From Ranitomeya imitator (Eukaryota), in contig NC_091282.1 in the NCBI RefSeq assembly GCF_032444005.1, positions 128,092,001-128,156,000 of the forward strand: DNA of 64,000 nt, read 5' to 3'. The translations under genes were made by a program, and so were the position numbers. The notes beneath the pieces are model-generated. The model made no database searches. It saw only the letters and a program-made list of their open reading frames with translations, and was not told the origin of the DNA. This document shows positions 15,735-64,000 of this stretch, one piece after another (the stretch's first letter is position 1; every line of letters begins with the position of its first letter).

Positions 15735-18700
15735 TGTTATGTAGGCAATCCAGTGACACAGTGTGCCAGCAATCAGAGCACATACAGTGATCTGACAATA
15801 ACCCAAAAACAATAGAACGAGCTCTGAGACGTGGAATCTCTGTAGACCGCAATACCTGAACCTATCCTAACACAACTAAAGGCAGCTGTGGATTGCGCCT
15901 GACACTACCTATGCAAGATAGAAAAACAAGCCTGACTTGCCTCAGAGAAATACCCCAAAGGAAAAGGCAGCCCCCCACATATAATGACTGTTAGCAAGAT
16001 GAAAAGACAAACGTAGGGATGAAATAGATTCAGCAAAGTGAGGCCCGATATTCTAGATAGAGCGAGGATAGCAAAGAGAACTTTGCAGTCTACAAAAAAC
16101 CCTAAAGCAAAAAACCACGCAAAGGGGGCAAAAAGACCCACCGTGCCGAACTAACGGCACGGCGGTACACCCTTTGCGTCTCAGAGCTTCCAGCAAAACG
16201 AAAAGACAAGCTGGACAGAAAAAGTAGCAACAAAAGCAAAGAAGCACTTATCAAAGCAGAGCAGCAGGCCACAGGAAAGATCCAGAAGCTCAGATCCAAC
16301 ACAGGAACATTGACAAGGAGCAAGGAAGGCAGAATCAGGTGGAGTTAAATAACAAAGCAGCCAACGAGCTCACCAGAACACCTGAGGGAGGAAGCTCAGA
16401 AGCTGCAGTACCACTTGTGACCACAGGAGTGAATTCAGCCACAGAATTCACAACAGTACCCCCCCCTTGAGGAGGGGTCACCGAACCCTCACCAGAGCCC
16501 CCAGGCCGACCAGGATGAGCCACATGAAAGGCACGAACAAGATCTGGAGCATGGACATCAGAGGCAAAAACCCAGGAATTATCTTCCTGAGCATAACCCT
16601 TCCATTTAACCAGATACTGGAGTTTCCGTCTAGAAACACGAGAATCCAAATTTTCTCCACAATATACTCCAATTCCCCCTCCACCAAAACCGGGGCAGGA
16701 GGCTCAACAGATGGAACCATAGGTGCCACGTATCTCCGCAACAACGACCTATGGAATACATTATGTATGGAAAAGGAGTCTGGGAGGGTCAGACGAAAAG
16801 ACACAGGATTGAGAATCTCAGAAATCCTATACGGACCAATAAAACGAGGTTTAAATTTAGGAGAGGAAACCTTCATAGGAATATGACGAGAAGATAACCA
16901 AACCAGATCCCCAACACGAAGTCGGGGACCCACACGGCGTCTGCGATTAGCGAAAAGTTGAGCCTTCTCCTGGGACAAGGTCAAATTGTCCACTACCTGA
17001 GTCCAGATCTTCTGCAACCTGTCCACCACAGAATCCACACCAGGACAGTCCGAAGACTCAACCTGTCCTGAAGAGAAACGAGGATGGAACCCAGAATTGC
17101 AGAAAAATGGAGAGACCAAGGTAGCCGAGCTGGCCCGATTATTAAGGGCGAACTCAGCCAACGGCAAAAAGGACACCCAATCATCCTGGTCTGCAGAAAC
17201 AAAACATCTCAGATATGTTTCCAAGGTCTGATTGGTTCGTTCGGTCTGGCCATTAGTCTGAGGATGGAAAGCCGAGGAAAAAGATAGGTCAATGCCCATC
17301 CTACCACAAAAGGCTCGCCAAAACCTTGAAACAAACTGGGAACCTCTGTCAGAAACAATATTCTCAGGAATGCCATGCAAACGAACCACATGCTGGAAGA
17401 ACAAAGGCACCAAATCAGAGGAGGAAGGCAATTTAACCAAGGGCACCAGATGGACCATTTTAGAAAAGCGATCACAGACCACCCAAATGACTGACATCTT
17501 TTGAGAAACGGGAAGGTCAGAAATGAAATCCATCGAAATATGTGTCCAAGGCCTCTTTGGGACCGGCAAGGGCAAAAGCAACCCACTGGCACGTGAACAG
17601 CAGGGCTTAGCCCTAGCACAAATCCCACAGGACTGCACAAAAGTACGTACATCCCGTGACAGAGATGGCTACCAGAAGGATCTAGCCACTAACTCTCTGG
17701 TACCAAAGATTCCAGGATGACCAGCCAACACCGAACAATGAAGTTCAGAGATAACTTTACTAGTCCACCTATCAGGGACGAACAGTTTCTCCGCTGGACA
17801 ACGATCAGGTTTATTCGCCTGAAACTTTTGCAACACTCGCCGCAAATCAGGGGAGATGGCAGACACAATGACTCCTTCCTTGAGGATACTCGCCGGCTCA
17901 GATGAACCCGGAGAGTCGGGCACAAAACTCCTAGACAGAGCATCCGCCTTCACATTTTTAGAGCCCGGAAGGTACGAAATCATAAAATCGAAGCGGGCAA
18001 AAAATAACGACCAACGGGCCTGTCTAGGATTCAAGCGCTTGGCAGACTCGAGATAAGTAAGGTTCTTATGATCAGTCAATACCACCACGCGATGCTTAGC
18101 TCCTTCAAGCCAATGACGCCATTCCTCGAATGCCCACTTCATGGCCAGCAACTCTCGGTTGCCCACATCATAATTACGCTCAGCAGCCGAAAACTTCCTG
18201 GAAAAAAAAAGCACATGGTTTCAACACTGAGCAACCAGAACCTCTCTGTGACAAAACCGCCCCTGCTCCAATCTCAGAAGCATCAACCTCGACCTGGAAC
18301 GGAAGAGAAACATCTGGTTGACACAACACAGGGGCAGAACAAAAACGATGCTTCAACTCCTGAAAAGCTTCCACAGCAGCAGAAGACCAATTAACCAAAT
18401 CAGCACCCTTCTTGGTCAAATCGGTCAATGGCTTGGCAATGCTAGAAAAATTACAGATGAAGCGACGATAAAAATTAGCAAAGCCCAGGAATTTTTGCAG
18501 ACTTTTCAGAGATGTCGGCTGAGTCCAATCCTGGATGGCTTGGACCTTAACCGGATCCATCTCGATAGTAGAAGGGGAAAAGATGAACCCCAAAAATGAA
18601 ACTTTCTGCACACCGAAGAGACACTTTGATCCCTTCACAAACAAAGAATTAGCACGCAGGACCTGGAAAACCATTCTGACCTGCTTCACATGAGAGTCCC

Positions 18701-21384
18701 AATCATCCGAGAAGATCAAAATGTCATCCAAGTAAACAATCAGGAATTTATCCAGATACTCACGGAAGATGTCATGCATAAAAGACTGAAACACAGATGG
18801 AGCATTGGCAAGTCCGAACGGCATCACTAGATACTCAAAATGACCCTCGGGCGTATTAAATGCAGTTTTCCATTCATCTCCTTGCCTGATTCTCACCAGA
18901 TTATACGCACCACGAAGATCTATCTTAGTGAACCAAGTAGCCCCCTTAATCCGAGCAAACAAGTCAGATAACAATGGCAAGGGATACTGAAATTTAACAG
19001 TGATCTTATTAAGAAGGCGGTAATCAATACACGGTCTCAGCGAACCATCCTTCTTGGCTACAAAAAAGAACCCTGCTCCCAGTGGTGATGACGATGGGTG
19101 AATATGTCCCTTCTCCAGGGATTCCTTCACATAACTGCGCATAGCGGCGTGTTCAGGCACGGATAAATTAAATAATCGACCTTTAGGGAATTTACTACCA
19201 GGAATCAAATTGATAGCACAATCACAATCCCTATGCGGAGGTAGGGCATCGGACTTGGGCTCTTCAAATACATCCTGATAATCAGACAAGAACTCTGGGA
19301 CCTCAGAAGGAGTGGATGACGAAATAGACAAAAATGGAACATCACCATGTACCCCCTGACAACCCCAGCTGGATACCGACATAGAGTTCCAATCCAATAC
19401 TGGATTATGGGTTTGCAGCCATGGCAACCCCAACACGACCACATCATGCAGATTATGTAGCACCAGAAAGCGAATAACTTCCTGATGTGCAGGAGCCATG
19501 CACATGGTCAGCTGGGTCCAGTACTGAGGTTTATTCTTGGCCAAAGGTGTAGCATCAATTCCTCTCAACGGAATAGGACACCGCAAAGGCTCCAAGAAAA
19601 ACCCACAACGTTTAGCATAATCCAAATCCATCAGATTCAGGGCAGCGCCTGAATCCACAAACGCCATGACAGAATACGATGACAAAGAGCATATCAAGGT
19701 AATGGACAGAAGGAATTTGGATTGTACAGTACCAATGACGGCAGACCTATCGAACCGCTTAGTGCGCTTAGGACAATCAGAAATAGCATGAGTGGAATCA
19801 CCACAGTAGAAACACAAACCATTCAGACGTCTGTGTTCTTGCCGTTCAACTCTGGTCATAGTCCTATCGCACTGCATAGGCTCAGGTTTAATCTTAGACA
19901 ATACCGCCAAATGGTGCACAGATTTACGCTCGCGCAAGCGTCGACCGATCTGAATGGCCAAAGACATAGACTCATTCAAACCAGCAGGCATAGGAAAACC
20001 CACCATGACATCCTTAAGAGCCTCAGAGAGACCCTTTCTGAACAAAGCTGCCAGCACAGATTCATTCCACAGAGTGAGTACTGACGACTTCCTAAATTTC
20101 TGACAATATACTTCTATATCATCCTGACCCTGGCACAAAGCCAGCAAATTTTTCTCAGCCTGATCCACTGAATTAGGCTCATCGTAAAGCAATCCGAGCG
20201 CCAGGAAAAACGCATTGACATTACTCAATGCAGGGTCTCCTGGCGCAAGAGAAAATGCCCAGTCCTGAGGGTCGCAGCGCAAAAAAGAAATAATAATCAA
20301 AACCTGTTGAATAGGATTACCAGAAGAATGAGGTTTCAAGGCCAGAAATAGCTTACAATTATTTTTGAAATTAAGAAACTTAGTTCTATCACCAAAAAAC
20401 AAATCAGGAATAGGAATTCTTGGTTCTAACATAGATTTCTGATCAATAGTATCTTGAATCCTTTGTACATTTGTAACGAGATTATCCATTGAATTGCACA
20501 GACCCTGAATATCCATGTCCACACCTGTGTCCTGAAACACCCAAATGTCTAGGGGAAAAAAAAGACTGAACACAGAGCTGAGAAAAAAAAATGATGTCAG
20601 AACTTCTTTTTTCCCTCTATTGAGAATCATTAGGTTTGGCTCCTTGTACTGTTATGTAGGCAATCCAGTGACACAGTGTGCCAGCAATCAGAGCACATAC
20701 AGTGATCTGACAATAACCCAAAAACAATAGAACGAGCTCTGAGACGTGGAATCTCTGTAGACCGCAATACCTGAACCTATCCTAACACAACTAAAGGCAG
20801 CTGTGGATTGCGCCTGACACTACCTATGCAACTCGGCACAGCCTGAGGAGCTGACTAGCCTGAAGATAGAAAAACAAGCCTGACTTGCCTCAGAGAAATA
20901 CCCCAAAGGAAAAGGCAGCCCCCCACATATAATGACTGTTAGCAAGATGAAAAGACAAACGTAGGGATGAAATAGATTCAGCAAAGTGAGGCCCGATATT
21001 CTAGATAGAGCGAGGATAGCAAAGAGAACCCTAAAGCAAAAAACCACGCAAAGGGGGCAAAAAGACCCACCGTGCCGAACTAACGGCACGGCGGTACACC
21101 CTTTGCGTCTCAGAGCTTCCAGCAAAACTAAAAGACAAGCTGGACAGAAAAAGTAGCAACAAAAGCAAAGAAGCACTTATCAAAGCAGAGCAGCAGGCCA
21201 CAGGAAAGATCCAGAAGCTCAGATCCAACACTGGAACATTGACAAGGAGCAAGGAAGGCAGAATCAGGTGGAGTTAAATAACAAAGCAGCCAACGAGCTC
21301 ACCAGAACACCTGAGGGAGGAAGCTCAGAAGCTGCAGTACCACTTGTGACCACAGGAGTGAATTCAGCCACAGAATTCACAACA
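15735..21384 (-). mobile_element. full-length family B chromodomain Ty3/Gypsy element, inactivated
   Basis: LTRs 15735-16455 and 20650-21384; PPT beside 16456; 6-bp TSD GGTTGC; gag-pol nearly identical to 26138-30415. Confidence 0.97.
16335..20630 (-). pseudogene. gag-pol with two 1-nt frameshifts (~18205, ~16655) and a TGG>TAG nonsense change (~17670)
   Basis: ORF pieces 18180-20630, 17669-18214, 16478-17638, 16335-16649 align to the intact 1425-aa ORF. Confidence 0.9.
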
Positions 21385-21869: not shown

Positions 21870-24410
21870 AGATATTGGGAATCTAAGGGGATTAAAACAT
21901 TATCCACATAAGAGGAGGAGATGAGTGTAAGACAGCATTTAATACACCTGAGATTCACTATGAATATTGTGTTATGCCTTTTGAGCTAAGTAATGCGCCG
22001 GCTGTTTATCAAAGTGTTGTTAATGATAAATTCAGAGATATAAGTGGTCAATATGTGGCCACCTACTGTATCTAGAAGACATATTGGTTTAGTCACTAGT
22101 TTATAAGTTACACATCTGAAATGTATGAACTGTATGTCATAGATTCAGAGACAATTCTTTATTTGCGAAATTTGAAAAATGTGTTTTCTTTTTTCAAGAT
22201 GTAATGAATGATTGGGTACAACTCAAAACTCTGAAAGCTTTGCAGCACTTTCTTGGGTTTGCTAAATACTATCATAAATACTGTATATTAAAAATGTTTC
22301 CTTGATTGCCAAACCATTGACCTAACTAAGGCACTTGAAACATGATTCTATACCTTCACTGAGTTGCGGAAGTTTAAGGAACATTTTTTATCTGACAGTG
22401 TATTCATCCAATCTCATCTAGATTATCATTTGGTAGTAGAGGAGGATGCCTCAGAAGTTGGAGTTGGAGCAATGTTATCACATGATATAACGTTTCTCTC
22501 TCAACTGTCTGTTTTTGCCCTCTTTTCACACTTCCTTGAATGAGCTAAACATAAAATCAATATTATCATAGACCACACAAATCTCACATATCTGCAATCA
22601 GCCAGAAGGCTTCTTTTCTAAGTTTGATTTTGTGGTGACATATTGACATGATAATAAAAGCATTGAAGCCGATGGGCTCTACCGAAGATTCTGTCCATCT
22701 GAAACTGAGTGCTCTAATGAAATTCCCATTCTAGTTGAGGGTCTAGTTGTGTCTTCTGTTTTCCTCGATCTTGTTGAGGAGCTATGTAGATCACAAGAGT
22801 TGGCTTCTAACAATACCCTTAACCAAGAATTGTTTGCTCCTCTTTAGTTCAAGCTGCGAGTTCTTCAGGAATCCTATGATTTAGTTCTTGCAGGGAATCC
22901 TGGGAATAACAATACTATCTGACTGGTCACCATGAATTTTTGATGGCCAACTATTGTTTGGGATTGCGTGGCATATGTGATCACATGTGAAATCTGTGCC
23001 AGAGCAAAAAAAAAACAAACTCTTTCGGCTGGACTTACTTACTCTTAATAGTCGTTAGACCTACATCTCCATGGACTTCATTACTGACTTACTATTTTCG
23101 GAATAGAAAACTGATATTTGATTGGTGATTGACAGATTCAGCAAACAATGATATTTTTTCCCTCTTACCTAACATCCAAATATTATGTACAGTATGTTAT
23201 TGATCAAAATCATTGTACGCCTTCAATGGCTCCAACTAGTGATGAGTGAGTATACTCATTACTCGACATTTCTCGAGCACGCTCGGGGTTCCTCCAAATA
23301 TTTTTTAGCGCTCGGAGATTTAGATTTTCTTGCCGCAACTGAATGATTTACATCTGTTAGCCAGCATAAGTACATGTGGGGGTTCCCTAGCAACCAGGCA
23401 ACCCCCAAATGTACTTAACAGATGTAAATCATTCAGCTGCGGCAATAAAAACTAAATTTCCGAGCACTAAAAAATACTCGGTGGACCCCCGAGCATGCTC
23501 GAGAAATCTCGAGTAATAAGTATATTCGCTCATCACTAGTTCCAACTGAGGAACTTTGTTAATCTCCAAATTATGTATTAAGATTAATATTGAATTTTCT
23601 TTTTATCTTCTTAGAATCTAAAGACCAATGGTCAGACAGACTGTGCTGATAATATACTCAAGCAATATCTTTGGTTTTATGTCTCTGATCATCAGTCTGA
23701 TTGGGTGGACAATTTTCCTTTAACTGAGTTTGCTATTAACAATAAGTACTAAGTATCTATTAAGATGTCTCCATTCTTCTATAGTCTTGAATAGCATCCT
23801 AATATTGGTTCTTTTTCAGCCACTGAGATGGATACTCCACAGGCCGATTATTCTATCAATAGGTTGAAGCTTATCTAGTCTGAGGTCAAAGAGAACTTGA
23901 TGAGGGCACAGGGTCGACAGACCTCTTCTGTTAATAAGAGGCGGACGGATGGGCCAAGCTTTGGTGTTGGGAACCAGGTGTGCTTATTCACTAAAAGCAT
24001 CAAACTTTAAGTTCTTTCTATTAAGCTAAGGCCCAAACATTTTGGTCCATATGAAATAACTGAGATCATTAACTTTGTAACCTTCCATTTGTATATTTTT
24101 CCTTCCTTTCGGAGACCCAGTTTAATCCACAAATTCCTGCTTAAAGTACACCGCTCATTAGTTCATTCTGTTGGTTATCCTCCTCTAGTGTTGGCCAGAT
24201 GCAGTCTGAAATTAAAAAAATTCTAGATGAGGTAGTGGAAGGCGTCTTACAGTATCATGCATACTGGAAAAGATATGGGTCAGAGGAGAGCTCTTAGGTT
24301 TTGGCAAGTATCATCAATGTCATTCCATCTGTCATTTTCTGCAAAAACTTGCCCTAAGGGTCCAAATACCCCTTTTAAAAGTGGGAGTACAGTAACATGC
24401 ATATTTGAAC
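21870..24410 (+). pseudogene. pol: old, heavily decayed chromovirus-like pol (RT-RH-IN)
   Basis: Fragments such as GDECKTAFNTPEIHYEYCVMPFELSNAPAVYQS, EEDASEVG, SMDFITDL recognisable despite many stops; PPT-like purine run at ~24400. Confidence 0.85.
23237..23538. mobile_element. palindromic MITE (hAT-like) inserted in the decayed integrase
   Basis: TAGTGATGAG...CTCATCACTA TIRs; 8-bp TSD GCTCCAAC/GTTCCAAC (1 mismatch). Confidence 0.8.
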
Positions 24411-26130: not shown

Positions 26131-26137
26131 CAATTCA

Positions 26138-29100
26138 ATGATTTCCAATAGAGGGAAAAAAGAAATCCTGACATCATTTTTTTTTCTTAGCTCTGTCTTC
26201 AGTCTTTTTTTTCCCCTAGACATTAGAGTGCTTCAGGACACAGCTGTGGACATGGATATTCAGGCTTTGTGCTCCTCAATGGATAATCTCGTTGTAAATG
26301 TACAAAAGATTCAAGATACTATTGATCAGAAATCGATGCTAGAACCAAGAATTCCGATTCCTGATTTGTTTTTTGGTGACAGAACTAAGTTCCTGAGCTT
26401 CAGAAATAATTGTAAGCTATTTTTGGCCTTGAAACCTCATTCTTCTGGTAATCCTATTCAACAGGTTTTGATTATTATTTCTTTTTTGCGCGGCGACCCA
26501 CAGGACTGGGCGTTTTCTCTTGCGCCAGGAGACCCTGCATTGAGTAATGTTGATGCATTTTTCCAGGCGCTGGGATTGCTTTACGATGAGCCTAATTCAG
26601 TGGATCAAGCTGAGAAAAATCTGCTGGCTTTATGCCAGGGTCAGGATGATGTAGAACTATATTGTCAGAAATTTAGAAAATGGTCAGTACTCACTCTGTG
26701 GAATGAATCTGCACTAGCGGCTTTGTTCAGAAAGGGTCTCTCTGAAGCTCTTAAGGATGTAATGGTGGGATTTCCTATGCCTGCTGGTTTGAATGAGTCT
26801 ATGTCCTTGGCCATTCAGATCGGTCGTCGCTTGCGCGAGCGTAAATCTGTGCACCATCTGGCGGTATTGTCTGAGAGTAAGCCTGAGCCTATGCAGTGCA
26901 ACAGGACTATGACTAAAGTAGAACGGCACGAACACAGACGTCTGAACAGACTGTGTTTCTATTGTGGTGATTCTACTCATGCTATTTCTAATTGTCCTAA
27001 ACGCACTAGGCGGTTCGATAGCTCTGCCGTTATTGGTACTGTACAGTCCAAATTCCTTTTGTCCATTACCTTAATGTGCTCTTTGTCATCATATTCTGTC
27101 ATGGCGTTTGTGGATTCAGGCGCTGCCCTGAATCTGATGGATTTGGATTATGCTAAACGTTGTGGATTTTTCTTGGAGCCTTTGCGGTGTCCTATTCCGT
27201 TGAGAGGAATTGATGCTACACCTCTGGCCAAGAATAAGCCTCAGTACTGGGCCCAGCTGACCATGTGCATGGCTCCTGCACATCAGGAAGTTATTCGCTT
27301 TTTGGTACTGCATAATTTGCATGATGTGGTCGTGTTGGGGTTGCCATGGCTACAAACCCATAATCCAGTATTGGATTGGAACTCTATGTCGGTAACCAGC
27401 TGGGGTTGTCAGGGAGTACATGGTGATGTTCCATTTTTGTCTATTTCGTCATCCATTCCTTCTGACATCCCAGAGTTCTTGTCGGACTTTCAGGATGTAT
27501 TTGAAGAGTCCAAGTCTGATGCCCTTCCTCCGCATAGGAATTGTGATTGTGCTATCGATTTGATTCCTGGTAGTAAATTCCCTAAGGGTCGTTTATTTAA
27601 TTTGTCCGTACCTGAACACACCGCTATGCGCAGTTATGTGAAGGAGTCCCTGGAGAAGGGACATATTCGCCCATCGTCGTCACCATTGGGAGCAGGGTTC
27701 TTTTTTGTAGCCAAGAAGGATGGTTCGCTAAGACCGTGTATTGATTACCGCCTTCTTAATAAGATCACTGTTAAGTTTCAGTATCCCTTGCCATTGATTT
27801 CTGACTTGTTTGCTCGGATTAAGGGGGCTAGTTGGTTTACTAAGATTGATCTTCGTGGTGCGTATAATCTGGTGAGAATCAGGCAGGGAGATGAATGGAA
27901 AACGGTATTTAATACGCCCGAGGGTCATTTTGAGTATCTGGTGATGCCGTTCGGACTTGCCAATGCTCCATCTGTTTTTCAGTCTTTTATGCATGACATT
28001 TTTCGTGAGTATCTGGATAAATTCTTGATTGTTTACTTGGATGACATTTTGATCTTCTCAGATGATTGGGAGTCTCATGTAAAGCAAGTCAGAATGGTTT
28101 TCCAGGTACTGCGTGCTAATTCCTTGTTTGTGAAGGGATCAAAGTGTCTCTTCGGTGTGCAGAAAGTTTCATTTTTGGGGTTCATCTTTTCCCCTTCTAC
28201 TATCGAGATGGATCCGGTTAAGGTTCAGGCCATCCAGGATTGGACTCAGCCGACATCTCTAAAAAGTTTGCAGAAATTCCTGGGCTTTGCTAATTTTTAT
28301 CGTCGCTTCATCTGTAATTTTTCTAGCATTGCCAGACCATTGACCGATTTGACCAAGAAGGGTGCTGATTTGGTTAATTGGTCTTCTGCTGCCGTGGAAG
28401 CTTTTCAGGAGTTGAAGCGTCGTTTTTGCTGTGCCCCTGTGTTGTGTCAACCTGATGTTTCTCTTCCGTTCCAGGTCGAGGTTGATGCTTCTGAGATTGG
28501 TGCAGGGGCGGTTTTGTCACAGAGAGGTTCTGGTTGCTCAGTGTTGAAACCATGTGCTTTCTTTTCCAGGAAATTTTCTGCTGCTGAGCGTAATTATGAT
28601 GTGGGCAACCGAGAGTTGCTGGCCATGAAGTGGGCATTCGAGGAGTGGCGTCATTGGCTTGAGGGTGCTAAGCATCGCGTGGTGGTTTTGACTGATCATA
28701 AGAACCTTACTTATCTTGAGTCTGCCAAGCGCTTGAATCCTAGACAGGCCCGTTGGTCGTTATTTTTTGCTCGTTTTGATTTTGTGATTTCATACCTTCC
28801 GGGCTCTAAAAATGTGAAGGCGGATGCTCTGTCTAGGAGTTTTGTGCCCGACTCTCCGGGGTTATCTGAGCCGGCGAGTATCCTCAAGGAAGGAGTCATT
28901 GTGTCTGCCATCTCCCCTGATTTGCGGAGAGTGTTGCAGAAATTTCAGGCTAATAAACCTGATCGTTGTCCGGCCGAGAAACTGTTCGTCCCTGATAGGT
29001 GGACTAGTAAAGTTATCTCTGAACTTCATTGTTCGGTGCTGGCCGGTCATCCAGGAATCTTTGGTACCAGGGAGTTGGTTGCTAGATCCTTTTGGTGGCC

Positions 29101-39239: not shown

Positions 39240-40821
39240 CACAGGACTTCCACCTCCGGTCACAGGACTGTCCACATCTGAGACCAGTTACCATGGACGA
39301 CTTGCATCGCTGTATACGCTGTGGGTACCAGGCTATTCAGCTACCATAGCTGCTGGCTCCGCTGGCCTGTGCTGCTTCACACACACAGCCAGCGCTCTGC
39401 AGTCTTCTGCTCTGCACACCAGCACACACCAGACAGACACTGACATTGCACCTGACACACCCATACCCCTTAGTGCAGGGTTTTTAACAAACAAACCTGT
39501 GGCTTTCAGCCACATGGAACACCCGGACCGGAAATCCGTGACTGCCATGCACACCGATGGACTTCATCCGTCTGCATGCACAACCTGGGGAGAACACACA
39601 GCTATCCCTACCTGTGACACAAGTCACTGCCTCACATATCCTCCACCTGTTCAGACCTGTGGGGTTGAACACTTGTCACCCCATATGGGCGCGAGACAGG
39701 GCATCTGTATGACCCTGTGACATCCCCAACCAAAACAACATTTTCAGTCTCTCCTGCCAATATGTCTAATCGGAGCCTATCGGGATTACACTCTGACCCT
39801 AATTTGATGACCCCTATGGCAGGTATCGCAAGATTTTCTGGTTCTACGCCCGACACAGCACATAAGCACATTCTCTGCTGCTTCCACTGCTGCTCCTGCT
39901 GCTGCAGAACCTTTTGCTGCAACTGCAGCTCCTCCGCAATGCAGACTTCATGGACCCGTCGATGCACAGTAAATCTTCGCAACCCCACCAAGTTACCGCC
40001 AGAAGCCTTCAATCTTTGTGGCCCCGCAGAGCCACAGCAAGCTGTCTTGAAAAACTTTTTCCAGCAGATTTGCACAACGCTATGCAGCATGCTTTGGGGT
40101 ATGCCTCAGTTCACACTGCTCGCATTCTTTCCACCATATGTAATGCTGCGGTAGCACCCGTATGCAGTGAAGAGGCAGTAACTCACAAAGTTCAAACACA
40201 AAAGTCTCTTTTATGTTTTTCTTCACACATAAAGGTGCATAGCATTTTATAGTACAAGTCATCAAAGTTCAATACATACAGTTGAATCACTTCTCAGTGC
40301 CCGTTTCATAGTACTACACATCATAAAGCTTTTAGATTGCAGTCCCTAAACACGCCAGCCTTTCCTTGTTCAAGTATCCGTGGGGTGACCGCACGCCATA
40401 TTACAGTCTCCAAACACAGCTTTACATATCGCAGATACTACACACACCAGTCCTTTTCTTACTAGTTCCCATGGGAGTCCTGCATCGCTGTATCACAGTC
40501 CCTTTACTCACACAGCCGTACACAGCCCAGGATATCCTCCAGATAGCAGCAGGGCATCATATCCATCTGTTTGCAATCGTTACACATGCCAGTCCTCTTT
40601 CGGGCACAGGACATCCACCTCCGTTTCACCTCCGGGCACAGGACTCTCCACATCCGAGACCTGTTACCATGGACGGCTTGCATCGCTGTATACGCTGCGG
40701 GTGCCAGGCTATTCAGCTACCATAGCTGCTGGCTCTGCTGGCCTTTCCTGCTTCACACAACCAGCGTTCTGCAAGCCTCTGCTCTGCACACCAGCACACA
40801 CCAGACTGATACTGACGTTGC

Positions 40822-41286
40822 TCAGTATAAGAGTCATCAAGCACAATATAACACTGAGGCCGGGAGTAAACAAATATCACTCCCCCATCGTAAACACCAA
40901 GAGCGGATGGCTGAAAAGGACTGCTCCCAAATACAATGTACACAACAAAATGGAGCATACTCAATGTCCCACCGATCATGATAGAAAGATTATTTTATTG
41001 AAACAAATCATGTACACAAATAAATATACAAATTACAATAAAGACCCCAAAACAGGAGGTACAAGGGGAAACATGGCGATAAACAGGGAAGGGTTGGGAA
41101 ATAAAGTGTATCCCATCAGGGTATAGGCATGAATATGGTCCAGGCAGAGTTCAATGGCTAACCCCATCAGAGCAGCATCATTACATATATAGGTAACATA
41201 CCCATCATGAGCCCAGAACAAACTGCAATTATATCCCAAATGCCCCTGACGCGCGTTTCGCGGTCCAGCTTTTTCAAAGGATATAG
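40822..41286 (-). mobile_element. Penelope-like/retrozyme-like 465-bp monomer
   Basis: 9-bp TSD TGACGTTGC (40813-40821, 41287-41295); absent from the sister unit; hammerhead motif at its 5' end, AATAAA further 3'. Confidence 0.7.
41243..41280 (-). ncRNA. minimal type-I hammerhead ribozyme motif (U3-A8 variant)
   Basis: CCT-TTGAAAA-AGCTGGACCGC-GAA-ACGCGCGT-C|AGG: palindromic stem III, GUC site, CCT/AGG stem I. Confidence 0.65.
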
Positions 41287-41444
41287 TGACGTTGCACCTG
41301 ACATCTGGCACACTCAGCCTCATGGAAAACCCGTACCGGAAATCCGTGACTGCCATGCACACCTATGGACTTCATCTGTCTCCATGCACAACCTGGGGAG
41401 AATACACAACGACCCCTACCTGTGACAGGAGTCACTGCCTCACA

Positions 41445-49899: not shown

Positions 49900-50623
49900 A
49901 TATAGTGTCAGTGTACAGGTAATACAGGGATCACCAATGACATTATACACAGAAGCGCTGTATATTGTGTCAATGTACAGGTAATACAGTGATCACTGGT
50001 GTCATTATACACAGGATCTCTGTATATAAAGTCAGTGTGTACAGATAGTACAGTGATCACTGGTGACATTATACACAGGATCTCGGTATATAAAGTCAGT
50101 GTACAGATAGTACAGTGATCACTGGTGACACTATACACAGGATCTCTGTATATAAAGTCAGTGTACAGATAGTACAGTGATCACTGGTGACATTATACAC
50201 AGGAGCTCTGTATATAAAGTCAGTGTACAGATAGTACAGTGATCACTGGTGACATACACAGGAGCTCTGTATATAGTGTCAGTGTACAGGTAATGCAGTG
50301 ATCACCAGTGATATTATACACAGGAGCTCTGTATATAGTGTTAGTGTATAGGTAATACAGTGATCGCCAGTGACATTATACACAGGAGTTCTGTATATAG
50401 TGTCAGTATACAGGTAATACAGGGATCACCAGTGACATTATACACAGGAGGTCTCTATATAGTGTCAGTGTACAGGTAATACAGAGATCACCAGTGACAT
50501 TATACACAGGAGATCTGTATATAGTGTCAGTTTACTGTAATACAGTGATCACCGATGACATTATACACAGGACCTCTGTGTATAGCATACAGTGTACAGG
50601 TAATACAGTGATCATCAGTGACA
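49900..50623. repeat. 62-bp tandem array
   Basis: ACAGATAGTA recurs at 50041, 50103, 50165. Confidence 0.93.
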
Positions 50624-50636
50624 TAGATACCTATCT

Positions 50637-50677
50637 GGACCTGTGGAAGCGTCAATAATGCGAAACGGCCGTTGTCC
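50637..50677 (+). ncRNA. minimal hammerhead ribozyme motif (A6 mutated) at the start of a ~180-bp Penelope-like fragment
   Basis: GGAC-CTGTGGA-AGCGTCAATAATGC-GAA-ACGGCCGT-T|GTCC: stem I GGAC/GTCC, palindromic stem III. Confidence 0.55.
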
Positions 50678-57430: not shown

Positions 57431-58331
57431 TTAGAATTGGGGGTTTCCTCTTTTTAGGCACATCAAGGGTTCTCCAAAAACGCGACATGTAGTCCAATCT
57501 CAATTCCAGCCAATTCTGCGTTGAAAAAGTAAAACAGTGCTCCTTCCCTTCCGAGCTCTCCCGTGCGCCCAAACAGGGGTTTACCCCAATATATGGGGTA
57601 TCAGCGTACTCAGGACAAATTGGACAACAAATTTTGGGGTCTTATTTCTATTGTTGACCTTGGGAAAATAAAAAAACATTTTTGTGGGAAAAAAATGATT
57701 TTTTATTTTCATGGCTCTGCGTTATAAACTGTAGTGAAACACTTAGGGGTTCAAAGTTCTCACCACACTTCTAGATAAGTTCCTTGGGGGGTCTAGTTTC
57801 CAATATGGGGACATTTGTGGGGAGTTTCTACTGTTTAGGTACATTACGAGCTCTGCAGACGCAATGTGACGCCTGCAGACCATTTCATCTAAGTCGGCAT
57901 TCCAAACGGCGCTCCTTCCCTTCTGAGCTCTGCCATGCACCCAAACGGTGGTTCCCCCCCACATATGGGATATCAGCGTACTCAGGACAAATTGGACAAC
58001 AACTTTTGGGGTCCAATTTCTCCTGTTACCTTTGGGAAAATACAAAACTGGGGGCTAAAAAATAATTTTTGTGAAAAAAAAAAAATTATTTTCATGGCTC
58101 TGCGTTATAAATTGTAATGAGAAGAACAAGGAGCACTGAGCGCACTACTATAATATATAGAAAAATCCTACCTGGGGTGCAAGAGTGGCAAACATATTAT
58201 TGCAAAAGAAAAAAGGAAAGAAAGCCACCATGAACAGGCACACCACAGGCGCATAAGACACCAATAAGTCACATTTAAGAAACAAGAAGTTTATTGGCAC
58301 ACCACACAAAGATTAAAACATAATTAAAACA

Positions 58332-61300
58332 CACCCACGGGGCCCGCAAACATTTATCTCACACATTAAAAATGCTAAGGGTAAAGAGGTTCATAGACCT
58401 GGGGATATTCTGTCTAGTTTTCATGATTATTACAGATCTCTCTACAACATAAACGGCCAATATAAAGATCTCCCTGTCCACTCCCTACAAGAGAAAATCA
58501 AATTCTACATCCAACAAAATAAATTACCCACAATTTCTGAGGAAATCCTAGCTAATTTAGAAGACGATTTTACCTTAGAGGAGGTCTCCTCTGTAATACA
58601 AAACCTAAAGCTAGGCAAAAGCCAGGGCCCTGACGGCTACACAGCAGGCTTCTATAAGCAGTTCACGGATTTACTGAGCCCCCCATTCTTATCAACTTGT
58701 AACTTTGTTTCCTCAGGGGGTTCTTTCCCTCCACAGGCCCTAATTGCCCATATCACAGTTATCCCTAAACCAGGAAAAGATCCATTCCTCTGCAGCAATT
58801 ATCGCCCCATCTCACTTATAAATTTAGATGTAAAAATCTATGCCAAAATGATCTCAAAGAGACTCAATAATCTCTTGCCCCACTTGGTTAACCAAGACCA
58901 GGTGGGTTTTGTACCCGGAAGGGAACCAAGGGACAACACTATTAGATCTATCGCTTTGATTGATAGCGCAAATAGAAGAGGTGAACCTTTATGTATTTTA
59001 TCGATGGATGCAGAAAAAGCATTCGATAGAGTGGGATGGGAATTCATGTACCAAATGCTCGAGGGAATCGGTTTGCGGAGGAGGGCATTGTGGAGTATTA
59101 GGGCCCTCTATGAGTCTCCTTCTGCTCAGGTCAGGGTAAACGGCTCGCTGTCAGACTCTTTTCATATTCATAATGGTACAAGACAGGGGTGTCCCTTGTC
59201 CCCCCTGCTATACGTACTAACCATGGAGCACTTGGCAACTACAATCCGTAACAACCCATCTATAGCGGGAGTGAGGATCCAATCAGAAGAACATAAACTA
59301 GCACTGTTTGCTGACGATGTACTTATGTATGTCACCTCCCCCATTACCAGCCTACCCAATATCCTCTCAGAATTACATAAATTCGGCTCCCTAAGTAATT
59401 TCAAAATAAATTCACATAAGTCTGAAATACTAAACATCTCATTACCGTCCTCTCTAGTCTCCCAATTAAGCTCCTCTTTTCCATTCCGATGGCGATCCGA
59501 CTCTCTTGACTATCTGGGTATAAAATTAACAGCCAAGCCTCTACAATTATATGACGCCAATTATAAAGTAGCTCTGAACAAAGCAGAGCTCGACCTGGAG
59601 AAATGGAACAAATTACATCTATCATGGCTGGGAAGAATTAATGCTATTAAAATGGATTTACTCCCGTGCCTCCTTTACTTCTTCCAGACCATTCCTCTGT
59701 TCCTACCAGCGTCGTTCTTCTCCAGACTCAAGACAGCAATAACGAGGTTTGTTTGGTCAGGGAAGCGCCCACGCCTGGCATACCGTCTCCTGAGAAGAAC
59801 TAAATTAACTGGGGGGTTGGGCCTCCCGGATTTCTCCCTTTACAACAACGCATCCCTTGGAACCTGTCTCCTAGATTTATTCCACCACAAATCCAATAAG
59901 AAATGGGTTGGTTTAGAAATGAGGCTCACAAGCAAAAAGCCTCTAACTCATATCTGGAGGGGGGGAATCACGAACGCTCAGCGAAATGACCTACCCCTTA
60001 TAACAAGGAACCTAATCCTATTCATTAAACATGGTTATCAAAAGCTTAACACCTCTTCCATTCCAGGCCCCTTAACCTCAATCTCTGATAACTTAGACTT
60101 CCCAGTGGGTTTAGACAAAATTAATTTTTTACACAAACATAAGGACGACTACCCAGTAGTCCATGACTATATAGAACAGGACTCGATAAAACCCCTGAGG
60201 ATGATTTTTGCAGGAGCTGAGCCACCGCCAGGCTCTTGGCTCCTCCATGAACAAATTAAAAGCTACCTCATCAAATTATCCAAACAGACTGACATCTACA
60301 GACCACTTACTCCTTTTGAGTCTGCGTGCCTGGGTGGGGACCCTCCAATGCACACGGTATCATTATTATACAAAATGTTTCAAGGGCACCAAATAACCCC
60401 AGACAACTCCACTATATTCTTTTCAAAATGGGAGAATGAACTAGGTGAACAACTACCACCGGAAGATCACGACACAAAAACCTTCTCTTCACCTTCAGAT
60501 CCTCTCTATGCTCAGACTATCAAGAGAGAAGCTATAGACTCTTGTCTAGGTGGTACAGATGTCCATCAAGTGTCCATATTATCTACCCCACCACCCCGGA
60601 TACTTGCTGGAGGTGCTGGGAGGTTGAGGGGACATACTCACATGTCTGGTGGTCCTGTCCACATATACATGAGTTTTGGGAAGATATCTTTGAACTTCAC
60701 AATAAACTATCCTTCCACAAAATCCAACCTACAATGGAATTAGCCTTATTATCCATTTGTGACCTCTCCATTGCCAAATTCAAGAAAGGCTTGTTGAGAC
60801 ACTTCCTAGCGGCAGCTCGTAACCTGATTCCCCGCTACTGGAAGCAATCTAAATCCCCTTCCCGCTCTGATTTCACAATGGAACTCAATCACATTTTTAG
60901 AATGGAGCAACTGATTGGTCAAGACACTGGAACCTCGGACAGGGTGTTTGGGGTCTGGTCTCCTTGGATCGCCTTTAGGGAAACTGATGAACTAAATAAC
61001 TGGTTACGCTAAATAACTAGCCCAGTACACCAGAAACCCATACTCACCATTTACCCTGACAATGGGACTAATATTGTACCACCATGAAAAACTACAGACT
61101 CCAGTTCACTTGGACCAGAAACTGGATTCTTATTCCCTTCCTACCACACCCACATCCTCTCCACTCCTACCCCTACCTCACCTTTTTTTTCTCCCCTTTT
61201 TTCTCTTTCTCTTTTCATCTTATCTTCTTTCTTTCGACTACTCGTCTTCTTCTCCTATCATAACCTAGCTCATCCGTAGAATCTCCTTTAGGAGTTTAGT

Positions 61301-61712
61301 ATTACGGGGAACCTAGTCACCACTACTCCCATTTAATAAATAAATAATATCTCCGTAACTCATAAAAGTGGAGTAGCGGGATCTCGGGGATTGTAATGTC
61401 TACAAACCTATATTACAATCATTAATAAATCCTTAATGTACTAAATGTAGTATGTCCATGTTCATAGGACTAGAACTATAATAACCAGCTTACAATACCC
61501 CAACTCCCTTTTCTTTTTTATTTTCTTTATACTCTCTTTGTTGAGACAGTTACATTTTTATTACAATATTGCAAGAGTGACAAATATTAGATATACAATA
61601 TGATTTGAATAATGATTATCTTACATTTTTGTACGTGTTTATAAATGCAAATTATTACTGTAATTCTCATGTTTTTTCATAAACAATTCAATAAACCTGA
61701 TTTACAAAAAAA
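58332..61712 (+). mobile_element. 5'-truncated L1-clade LINE
   Basis: 17-bp TSD AAAACATAATTAAAACA at a TT|AAAA site; AATAAA at 61690 and short poly(A); ORF2 remnant. Confidence 0.95.
58380..61012 (+). pseudogene. L1 ORF2 (RT and C-terminal Cys domain), truncated, frameshift near 60540
   Basis: NYRPISL, RQGCPLSPLLY, LFADD, CWRC..HVWWSC motifs in ORFs 58848-60743 and 60542-61012. Confidence 0.92.
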
Positions 61713-62353
61713 AAACATAATTAAAACAATACAACATGAGAAACTTGGTCCATGTACATATAATAATATATAATATTTCAGTAAACAACTACATGCCTGC
61801 ACAAAAACATGAGTATAAGTCTACCCCCTGGCTCATGGGACTAGAGCAAAAAAATGCTGTGAAAAATCCACATATAGACTGCCCGTATCCAACAGGCAAA
61901 TAGAAATAAACCCAAAGGAGGCGGAAAGTGACCTGACTGCAGTACCTAGTAGTAAGCCACCTAGAAACCACAGGTGGATGGAATTGGAAAATACCTCGCA
62001 AGAGCAGATCAGGCCCTGCCAAAAATATGCAGTGTTAGAGTGTTAAACTGCCCATGGTCGAACCAGAACGTATAATATTACCCAAAAGGAGTAACAAGGG
62101 ACAAAGTCCCCGTGTGCAGGCAGGCTGGACCAAGAGACGCGACCCCACGCGTATCGCCCTCTAAATAGGGCTTCCCCTGACTTTGTCCCTTGTTACTCCT
62201 TTTGGGTAATATTATACTTTCTGGTTCGACCATGGGCAGTTTAACACCCTAACACTGCATATTTTTGGCAGGGCCTGATCTGCTCTTGCGAGGTATTTTC
62301 CAATTCCATCCACCTGTGGTTTGTGGGTGGCTTACTACTAGGTACTGCAGTCA

Positions 62354-63112
62354 TGGAAACAGGAACACATGGGCTACTTGCACAGTGAACAAGTCTGTAT
62401 GATCATGTTCACACACCACCAAGAAACCTGAAGACACAAAAGAGAATAGTAAAACCAAAAACACTCAGTTTGAAAAAATGTTGCAGTAATCCGCAAGTGC
62501 TAGTAAAAGATGTAAAAAACAGGGTATTTGGTTGATACGTTTTTTGCAAAAAATGTATACTAAGCTGCTCTACCAATCTTCACGGTATACCCTTATCAGA
62601 GCAGTCCTAACTAATGTATGCAATCCCTATCTGATGTATTTAAAAACCTGATCATCTGTATATAACCTGTGTGAACAGGGTTCAGAGAGGAAAAAATCCA
62701 TGTGTGCATGTGTGGAACTCCCCAGTCTTGTAGACACAAGACATGTTTCCATAATTGTTCTCTTGTGTCTACAAGACTGGGGAGTTCCACCACTCCTCTT
62801 GGGCTATCTGCACAAAAGCTGTTCTACCCTGTATGCACACATGGATTTTTTCCTCTCTGAACCCTGTTCACACAGGTTACATACAGATGATCAGGTTTTT
62901 AAATACATCAGATAGGGATTGCATACATTAGTTAGGACTGCTCTGATAAGGGTATACCGTGAAGATTGGTAGAGCAGCTTAGTATACATTTTTTGCAAAA
63001 AACGTATCAACCAAATACCCTGTCTTTTACATCTTTTACTAGCACTTGCGGATTACTGCAACATTTTTTCAAACTGAGTGTTTTTGGTTTTACTATTCTC
63101 TTTTGTGTCTTT
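62354..63112 (-). mobile_element. second fold-back Penelope-like element nested in the right arm of the first
   Basis: 14-bp TSD AGGTACTGCAGTCA (62340-62353, 63113-63126); 279-bp arms 62431-62709/62833-63111; 30-bp hairpin 62712-62741/62761-62790; GAAACATGTC on the minus strand in the hairpin loop. Confidence 0.7.
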
Positions 63113-63711
63113 AGGTACTGCAGTCAGGTCACTTTCCGCCTCCCTTGGGTTTATTTCTATTTGCCTGTTGGATACGGGCAGTCTATATGTGGATTTTTCA
63201 CAGCATTTTTTTGCTCTAGTCCCATGAGCCAGGGGGTAGGCTTATACTCATGTTTTTGTGCAGGCATGTAATTGTTTACTGAAATATTATATATTATTAT
63301 ATGTACATGGACCAAGTTTCTCATGTTGTATTGTTTTACTTATGTTTTCATCTTTGTGTGCTGTGCCAATAAACTTCTGGTTTCTTATATGTGACTTATT
63401 GGTGTCTTATGCGCCTGTGGTGTGCATGTTCATGGTGGCTTTCTTTCCTTTTTTCTTTTGCAGTAAATTGTAATGAAACACTTGGGGGTTCAAAGCTCTC
63501 ACAACACATCTAGATAAGTTTCTTAGGGGGTCTACTTTCCAAAATGGTGTCACTTGTGGGGGGTTTCAATGTTTAGGCACATCAGGGGCTCTCCAAACGC
63601 GACATGGTCTCAATTCCAGTAAATTTTGCATTGAAAAGTCAAATGGCGCTCCTTCCCTTCCGAGCACTGCCATGCGTCCAAACAGTGGTTTACCCCCACA
63701 TATGGGGTATC

Positions 63712-64000
63712 TGTTGTGAATTCTGTTATCGAACTCCCTCCTGTGGTCATGAATGGTACTTCGGCGAGTTCTGTCCATAGACTGCCTCTGGTGGCTGAGT
63801 GGAGCTGCTGCTTCTGAGGTTCCTTCCACAGGTGACTTAGATTATTCTTTGGCTGGCTGCTCTATTTAACTCCACTCAGATCATTACTCCATGCCAGCTG
63901 TCAATGTTCTTGTACTGGTTCAGTTCGCTCTTGGATCTTTCTGGTGACCTGTCTACTCCAGCAGAAGCTAAGTCCCTGCTAGTTAATTATTTGTTCATTG
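63712..64000 (+). mobile_element. family B LTR, truncated by the window edge
   Basis: TGTTGTGAATTCTG start, similar to the 1574 and 11370 LTRs. Confidence 0.92.

Follow-up and report, generated by a model that had tools for sequence, protein, structure and literature searches.

Nested head-to-head fold-backs of two non-coding elements in an abundant repeat of Ranitomeya imitator: anatomy and possible origin by Penelope-like integration

A 64,000-nucleotide stretch of the Ranitomeya imitator genome (NCBI RefSeq assembly GCF_032444005.1, contig NC_091282.1, positions 128,092,001–128,156,000 of the forward strand; hereafter the window, in whose own coordinates all positions are given) holds at 58108–63476 a nested block of two fold-back insertions and an L1-type long interspersed nuclear element (LINE). 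With modest confidence, we favour a reading in which three separate retrotransposition events struck a hyper-abundant host repeat, the two fold-backs having been formed by priming from both target strands in the manner of Penelope-like elements (PLEs).

The anatomy was checked by reading 57900–64000 and by a repeat scan, and the arms were aligned after removal of the nested elements. The outer fold-back spans 58121–63463 and is made of two head-to-head, 5′-truncated copies inside a single target-site duplication (TSD) of 13 bp, at 58108–58120 and 63464–63476. Its arms align over 511 nt with 13 mismatches and no indels (97.5% identity; Kimura two-parameter distance (K2P) 0.026) and enclose a 70-nt loop of unique sequence (62109–62178). 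The alignment stops 80 nt before the end of the left copy, which alone carries a tail (58121–58200). The unit is at least 661 nt long, non-coding and without an open reading frame (ORF). The original prediction, made from the letters of this DNA, had described an inverted repeat of about 510 bp with a 70-nt loop and an 80-nt tail, an L1 in the left arm and a second fold-back in the right; alignment and repeat scan confirm each of these. It had also resolved the block by three nested TSDs of 13, 14 and 17 bp, of which the first and last stand and the inner one proved to be 15 bp long. The block and its paralogous empty site are made up as follows.

57725–57737, no strand: paralogous empty site in the adjoining host-repeat copy (repeat comparison)
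58108–58120, no strand: left copy of the outer TSD, TAAATTGTAATGA (sequence reading and repeat comparison)
58121–58200, minus strand: 80-nt tail, the 3′ extension of the longer left outer copy, missing from the right copy (arm alignment)
58201–58331, minus strand: outer left copy, 3′ portion of the arm (repeat scan, arm alignment)
58332–61711, plus strand: 5′-truncated L1-type LINE (RVT_1 match, TSD, AATAAA and A-run)
61729–62108, minus strand: outer left copy, 5′ portion of the arm (repeat scan, arm alignment)
62109–62178, minus strand: 70-nt outer loop with a degenerate hammerhead-like string at 62147–62179 on the minus strand (sequence, motif scan)
62179–62353, plus strand: outer right copy, 5′ portion, of which the final 15 nt (62339–62353) are the left copy of the inner TSD (repeat scan, arm alignment)
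62354–62430, minus strand: tail of 72–77 nt of the inner left copy, whose end continues into the unit start in other genomic copies (arm alignment, contigs)
62431–62741, minus strand: inner left copy, made of the 279-nt arm, 2 nt and the 30-nt 5′ segment, without the 40-nt segment (repeat scan, arm alignment)
62742–63111, plus strand: inner right copy, with its 5′ end at about 62744 in the 19-nt loop, followed by the 30-nt, 40-nt and 279-nt segments, without a tail (repeat scan, arm alignment, contigs)
63112–63126, no strand: right copy of the inner TSD, TAGGTACTGCAGTCA (repeat scan)
63127–63463, plus strand: outer right copy, 3′ portion, which stops 80 nt before the 3′ end of the other copy (repeat scan, arm alignment)
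63464–63476, no strand: right copy of the outer TSD (sequence reading and repeat comparison)

The inner fold-back (62354–63111) sits in the right outer arm and likewise consists of two head-to-head, 5′-truncated copies inside a single TSD (62339–62353 and 63112–63126); the 15-mer is single-copy in the opposite, left outer arm, at 61934–61948. The 279-bp fold-back originally reported here is real, and a further pair of 30 nt (62712–62741 and 62761–62790) adds to its arms, which align over 311 positions with 2 mismatches (99.4% identity, K2P 0.0065). A 19-nt loop (62742–62760) separates the copies, the tail of 72–77 nt (62354–62430) belongs to the left copy only, and a 40-nt segment (62791–62832) is found in the right copy alone, between its two arm segments. 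We considered this segment as a retained intron and rejected the idea, as it is too short and lacks a splice-site pattern. The family has no ORF.

Once the L1 is taken out, 1,946 nt remain, for which a folding energy of −1538 kcal/mol is computed (shuffles: about −480 kcal/mol); the predicted structure is a three-way branch of 336, 164 and 282+32 bp. The multi-branch double-stranded RNA (dsRNA) that had been foreseen for such a transcript is therefore recovered; its strength and branching follow trivially from the inverted repeats, and an extra branch is present for the sole reason that the 40-nt segment is unique to the inner right copy.

The host sequence on both sides of the block (57500–58120 and 63464–63720) is repetitive, with a periodicity of about 375 bp. 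In contigs assembled from sequencing runs, through which other genomic copies were examined throughout, its summed word depth is 3–5 million, compared with about 10 for single-copy contigs; the repeat thus amounts to several hundred thousand copy-equivalents and is among the most abundant sequences of the genome. One adjoining host-repeat copy preserves the unoccupied state: 57669–57737 aligns to 58056–58120 and 57725–57808 aligns to 63464–63547, and in this uninterrupted paralog the 13-mer is single-copy and the left and right flanks are contiguous, so that 58121–63463 came in as an insertion. Together with the TSDs, the empty site shows that each fold-back arrived as a single insertion. The outer fold-back came first and the L1 and the inner fold-back later. 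The same nesting order had been claimed at the outset, and the arm divergence agrees with it, K2P being larger for the outer (0.026) than for the inner (0.0065) pair.

At three sites of the left arm, 58237 and 58275 among them, where the arms differ, all other family copies in the sequencing runs match the right arm, so that the outer arms began alike and then gained private changes. An assumed mutation rate of roughly 1–2 × 10^-9 per site per year would, for arms that were identical at birth, date the outer insertion to around 6–13 million years ago and give the inner one a quarter of that age.

The L1 lies between perfect TSD copies of 17 bp (58315–58331 and 61712–61728) at a TT/AAAA target (GATT/AAAACA). 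Despite its 5′ truncation it keeps a 631-codon open ORF2 remnant at 58848–60743, with an RVT_1 match at E=3.6e-29, and it ends in an AATAAA at 61690 followed by a short poly(A). The LINE reverse transcriptase (RT), the poly(A) 3′ end, the TT/AAAA target and a TSD within 7–20 bp identify it as an L1-type LINE. Its nearest ORF2 proteins are anuran LINE ORF2s, only 44–48% identical, several of which carry the APE endonuclease domain PF03372 that is missing from this copy because of its 5′ truncation. The perfect TSD points to a young insertion, as does the open ORF2 segment.

Other genomic copies of the two fold-back families help to place the junctions. The outer family is low-copy (depth 85–300). 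Contigs of its other copies cross the tail/arm boundary uninterrupted, and a paralogous contig, present in two records, extends from the left arm 13 nt into the loop; because of this contig, we assign the loop, weakly, to the left copy, of which it is most likely the 5′ end. The inner family has a summed word depth of about 1 million, or roughly 10^5 copy-equivalents. Many of its contigs depart exactly at 62744 and hold upstream of this point the tail end, not the mirror arm. Those reaching 62354 often go on into the unit start, and loose ends at 62744 and 62353 are found beside opposite-strand joints at 62353/62753 and 62362/62744. Elsewhere in the genome, then, the inner unit is circularly permuted or partially tandem, with a reconstructed length of about 437 nt and 8 nt (TGTTTCCA) common to both of its ends. 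Since the sequence upstream of 62744 is tail in the other copies, the inner fold-back junction is private to this locus, which means that the fold-back arose during integration and does not transpose as a palindrome. The inner loop belongs to the right, tail-less copy.

Transcriptome-sized runs of this organism and of a second one, together with further such runs, contain near-identical 31-mers of the inner family at 52–69% across several studies; this is compatible with transcription of the family, without proving it, and the family is probably common to related species. An exact 25-mer of the family had no match in metagenome contigs. The proposal that such elements insert preferentially into each other finds no support in these counts: the nesting seen here is a single case, and a family as numerous as the inner one (about 10^5 copies) is expected to nest by chance in any 1–2-kb element at the percent level.

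From the observed anatomy, order of events, microhomologies and private inner junction, we infer an enzyme and a series of steps that would run as follows. The outer retroelement, low-copy, non-coding and with a unit no shorter than 661 nt, would have inserted as a head-to-head pair inside the 13-bp TSD; an L1-type LINE would next have entered its left copy by ordinary target-primed reverse transcription (TPRT) at the TT/AAAA site, and an unrelated, extremely abundant non-coding element would have entered the right copy as a head-to-head pair inside the 15-bp TSD. For both fold-backs, a Penelope-like enzyme with RT and GIY-YIG domains, supplied in trans, would nick the two target strands 13–15 bp apart, and both 3′ hydroxyls would prime complementary DNA (cDNA) synthesis on the element RNA. 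One cDNA would start at the RNA 3′ end and give the copy with the tail, and the other would start about 75–80 nt inside that end, where the RNA has microhomology to the nicked target, and give the tail-less copy. Both cDNAs would stop within 19–70 nt of a common 5′ end and would be joined head to head with 0–3 nt of microhomology, the remainder of the longer copy becoming the loop. No hammerhead ribozyme would take part in either element.

Microhomology at both tail-less ends fits priming from both nicks, and so does the reach of the two copies in either fold-back to within 19–70 nt of one 5′ end, which short templates copied in full would give. At the outer end the TSD reads TAAATTGT and the template continuation TAATATGT, a match at six of eight positions; at the inner end TAGGT faces CAGGT, a match at four of five, and the joint chance of the two is of the order of 10^-4. 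Taking the A-rich strand (GCCACCATG at 58225–58233) as sense was tried and set aside, as it would centre the 3′ ends, an arrangement that no target-primed mechanism accounts for; we keep it only as a caveat.

Both fold-backs are of retro-insertion nature, as judged from their long and variable TSDs, their ends without a common terminal inverted repeat (TIR) and the private inner junction. In PLE insertions an inverted, 5′-truncated copy adjoins the main one, and just one of the two ends bears a tail (Craig et al. 2021, PMC8557442). In vitro, a purified PLE protein cuts both target strands and extends each of them, reverse transcription beginning at two sites whose spacing corresponds to the tail, and hammerhead mutants still insert in this system (Frangieh et al. 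2024, PMC11167929). The fold-backs resemble PLE insertions (Evgen'ev & Arkhipova 2005; Arkhipova 2006; PMC8557442; PMC11167929) in that each has an inverted 5′-truncated copy adjoining the main copy, head to head, inside one TSD of variable length, in their one-sided extension, in the apparent partial tandems of the inner family, where the tail continues into the unit start in other copies, and in a footprint compatible with priming from both nicked strands. The description of the block as Penelope-like inside Penelope-like fits the insertion architecture. As a statement of homology it is not supported: the units are unrelated in sequence, and no RT/GIY-YIG partner was linked to either. We use the PLE label as an architectural likeness.

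Several observations weigh against this assignment. An autonomous PLE would have one ORF with a telomerase-like RT and a GIY-YIG domain, and no such ORF was found in the elements or in the window, nor was an autonomous partner linked to them. The absence of a PLE ORF had been stated from the start, and the ORFs of 58100–63500 indeed give only the RVT_1 of the L1; elsewhere in the window the ten largest ORFs are of Ty3/gypsy or Tc1 type or could not be assigned, and the translated frames of the outer and inner units yielded no candidate against the protein collection. The hammerhead carried in the pseudo-LTR (pLTR) of canonical endonuclease-bearing (EN+) PLEs, typical of those of vertebrates, is lacking from both units in canonical and minimal form, although Naiad/Chlamys-type PLEs also lack a hammerhead (PMC8557442). 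The tails, at 80 nt (outer) and 72–77 nt (inner), are double the 30–40 bp given in the literature. The 3′ ends are, in the inferred sense, pyrimidine/GU-rich, compared with the AC-rich stem-loop start of the PLE studied in vitro, and the TSDs show no clear placement at the ATT motif that this PLE enzyme favours. The sense strand itself is assigned from architecture only. Finally, pairwise alignments on both strands among the outer unit, the inner unit and a third element of the window (40822–41286) gave z≤2.3 against shuffles; we reject a family relationship among the three, and the lack of significant similarity weakens the family call.

The original prediction placed a ribozyme at the centre of the process: RT would switch template at or near a hammerhead, and the outer junction would cut into the hammerhead core. 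The letters it quoted for the minus strand at 62178/62179 are correct, and the string 62179–62147 does have a suggestive layout, with a GGAAG box, a bulged A, a helix II of 4–5 bp closed by a G-C pair, GATA in the GAAA position and a CGCG palindrome; a near-canonical motif of like layout lies at 50641–50672. The same string departs from the core at two positions of the CUGANGA box and at one of GAAA, carries a G at cleavage position 17 and has no helix I. The strict pattern CTGANGA...CGAAAC has no match in the window. A minimal hammerhead ribozyme (min-HHR) descriptor after Cervera & De la Pena 2014 (PMC4209133), composed of CUGANGA or its U3-A8 variant, an optional bulge, helix II, GAAA, a short palindrome, U-H and helix I, has none in the fold-back region; with one core mismatch allowed, its sole match in the window is 50641–50672. 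Once the descriptor is relaxed enough to accept the junction string, it finds 18 matches in the window, as against a mean of 20.3 in Markov shuffles, so that motifs this loose occur at chance frequency; the probability of such a match in a given 70-nt stretch is about 1%, a figure that does not yet take the freedom of strand, junction and degeneracy into account. Nor can the 2.5% arm divergence explain four core changes since insertion.

Rfam reported no hammerhead in 57500–64000 at E≤10, only hairpin-type microRNA look-alikes at the inner apex, and nothing in the whole window at gathering thresholds; it also misses the hammerhead-like strings at 41240–41286 and 50641 and is thus insensitive to minimal variants, so that its silence weighs little. 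The outer unit and the inner unit, the latter searched as a dimer on both strands, have no motif with ≤2 core mismatches (and, for the inner, a credible helix II/III), and nothing hammerhead-like stands at the inner junction. Neither element has a functional hammerhead, ribozyme-positioned junctions are unsupported, and template switching at a ribozyme is very improbable as the origin of these fold-backs.

The main rival to dual-strand priming is a single TPRT followed by snap-back, in which the cDNA folds back at the RNA 5′ end, primes itself and copies itself, and the returning strand, about 75 nt short of the start, is linked through microhomology to the opposite end of the target, leaving the tail. 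We judge it unlikely, while acknowledging that it would produce small loops just as well: those seen here measure 19 nt (unit of 437 nt) and 70 nt (unit of 661 nt), a point that tells against our preferred reading. A possible 3-nt microhomology (GTC/GAC) at the outer junction and the target microhomology at both tail-less ends also suit it. What speaks against it is the extra end-joining step, needed at a similar distance (72–80 nt) in two unrelated elements, and the 40-nt difference between the inner arms, unexpected from faithful self-copying, though an RT slip could make it. Moreover, the only biochemical data for the class show direct extension of both strands (PMC11167929). Quite unlikely, in our view, is the idea that both non-coding elements were mobilised through twin priming by the enzyme of a LINE, be it L1, CR1/L2 or another with an APE-type RT, and not by that of a PLE. 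TSDs of 13–17 bp are in the L1 range, L1 was active at the same locus, and twin priming with internal microhomology is established for L1. None of the four 3′ ends has a poly(A) or 3′ microsatellite, however, and the fold-back targets are not TT/AAAA; what L1 twin priming inverts are separate stretches of a single RNA, with no second copy of the entire unit, and one-sided tails and partial tandems are not LINE features (PMC8557442). The structure could also be a chimeric fold-back read built into the assembly. Palindromes are a known assembly hazard, and no junction-spanning contig or read was shown, the comparison having used contigs from sequencing runs. Such an artefact is nevertheless unlikely in the extreme: the arms differ at 13 (outer) and 2 (inner) sites and by the 40-nt indel, each outer arm holds a different nested insertion, every one with its own TSD, and the entire structure is bracketed by a TSD with an empty-site paralog.

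Comparison with known systems sets the fold-backs apart from each of them in some respect. From PLEs proper they differ in having no RT/GIY-YIG ORF and no hammerhead, in their tails of 72–80 nt and in their pyrimidine-rich 3′ ends; we liken them by architecture, not sequence. In L1 twin priming, reportedly described by Ostertag and Kazazian in 2001, the 3′ end of the second nick anneals internally by microhomology and primes an inverted copy. The fold-backs would share such priming with it; unlike twin priming, which inverts non-overlapping parts, they hold nearly the whole unit twice and have no poly(A). PLE pLTRs gave rise to the non-coding tandem units of frogs, as shown by Li, Clavereau & Pollet (2026; bioRxiv 10.64898/2026.07.22.740005). 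The animal non-LTR retrozymes, which are non-autonomous PLE pLTR derivatives in frogs (Cervera & de la Pena 2020, PMC7229834; bioRxiv 10.64898/2026.07.22.740005), resemble the inner family in their short non-coding unit (about 437 nt in the inner family), in occurring as monomers and as tandem or permuted copies, in being very abundant in an amphibian and in having sequence in transcriptome-sized runs. Unlike them, the inner unit has no type I hammerhead, even across the unit junction, and forms mirror-image pairs, not tandem arrays. Dual min-hammerheads 100–700 bp apart on opposite strands (Cervera & De la Pena 2014, PMC4209133) offer a further parallel as short, head-to-head, truncated PLE-type pairs; the fold-backs differ from these in having no hammerhead on either strand. 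A TIR or foldback transposon or a miniature inverted-repeat transposable element (MITE) was rejected on account of the unlike termini, with their one-sided tail, and of the varying TSD length (13 and 15 bp), and a DIRS-like element on account of the TSDs and the lack of an ORF.

Other elements of the window were recorded alongside. The third element aligned above is a 465-bp insertion at 40822–41286 (minus strand), with the TSD TGACGTTGC at 40813–40821 and 41287–41295, unrelated in sequence to either fold-back; its minus-strand 5′ end, TTGAAAA...GAAAC-GCGC-GTC, is a U3-A8-type hammerhead-like string with a helix II of just 2 bp. The only near-canonical minimal hammerhead of the window, 50641–50672 (plus strand), adjoins a roughly 60-bp tandem array at 50300–50630 and reads CTGTGGA...GCGAAAC-GGCC-GTT, with helices I and II of 4 bp each and one core mismatch (A6 to U). 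At 23234–23541 lies a MITE-like element of 308 bp, whose inverted arms of 126 nt start TAGTGATGAG and whose TSD appears to measure 7–8 bp (TCCAAC core); it differs in architecture from the fold-backs by its symmetric termini and its lack of a tail. Two inverted Ty3/gypsy pol regions of 2.4 kb, 94% alike, at 18191–20631 and 26137–28577, flank an interval of 5.5 kb.

The locus is an ordinary nested transposon pile-up of a kind already known. Its value is that of a clean, datable example of integration, in which all junctions, the TSDs and one empty site have been kept. What it adds is modest: two unrelated, ribozyme-less families with the same footprint, long tails (72–80 nt) and microhomology to the target. 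A bolder claim, which we regard as possible but doubtful, is that the fold-backs are in vivo footprints of dual-strand TPRT on ribozyme-less non-coding RNAs, that the second strand was primed through target microhomology about 75–80 nt inside the RNA 3′ end, which would be the origin of the tail, that the inner family ranks among the most successful PLE parasites of a vertebrate and that the hammerhead is dispensable for mobilisation in vivo. The long, near-perfect inverted repeats are potential sources of dsRNA and of assembly or replication trouble. If the pattern held genome-wide, the model of PLE integration derived in vitro would gain support from events in vivo, and a frog with a giant genome would be seen to carry a non-autonomous, ribozyme-free family in very high abundance.

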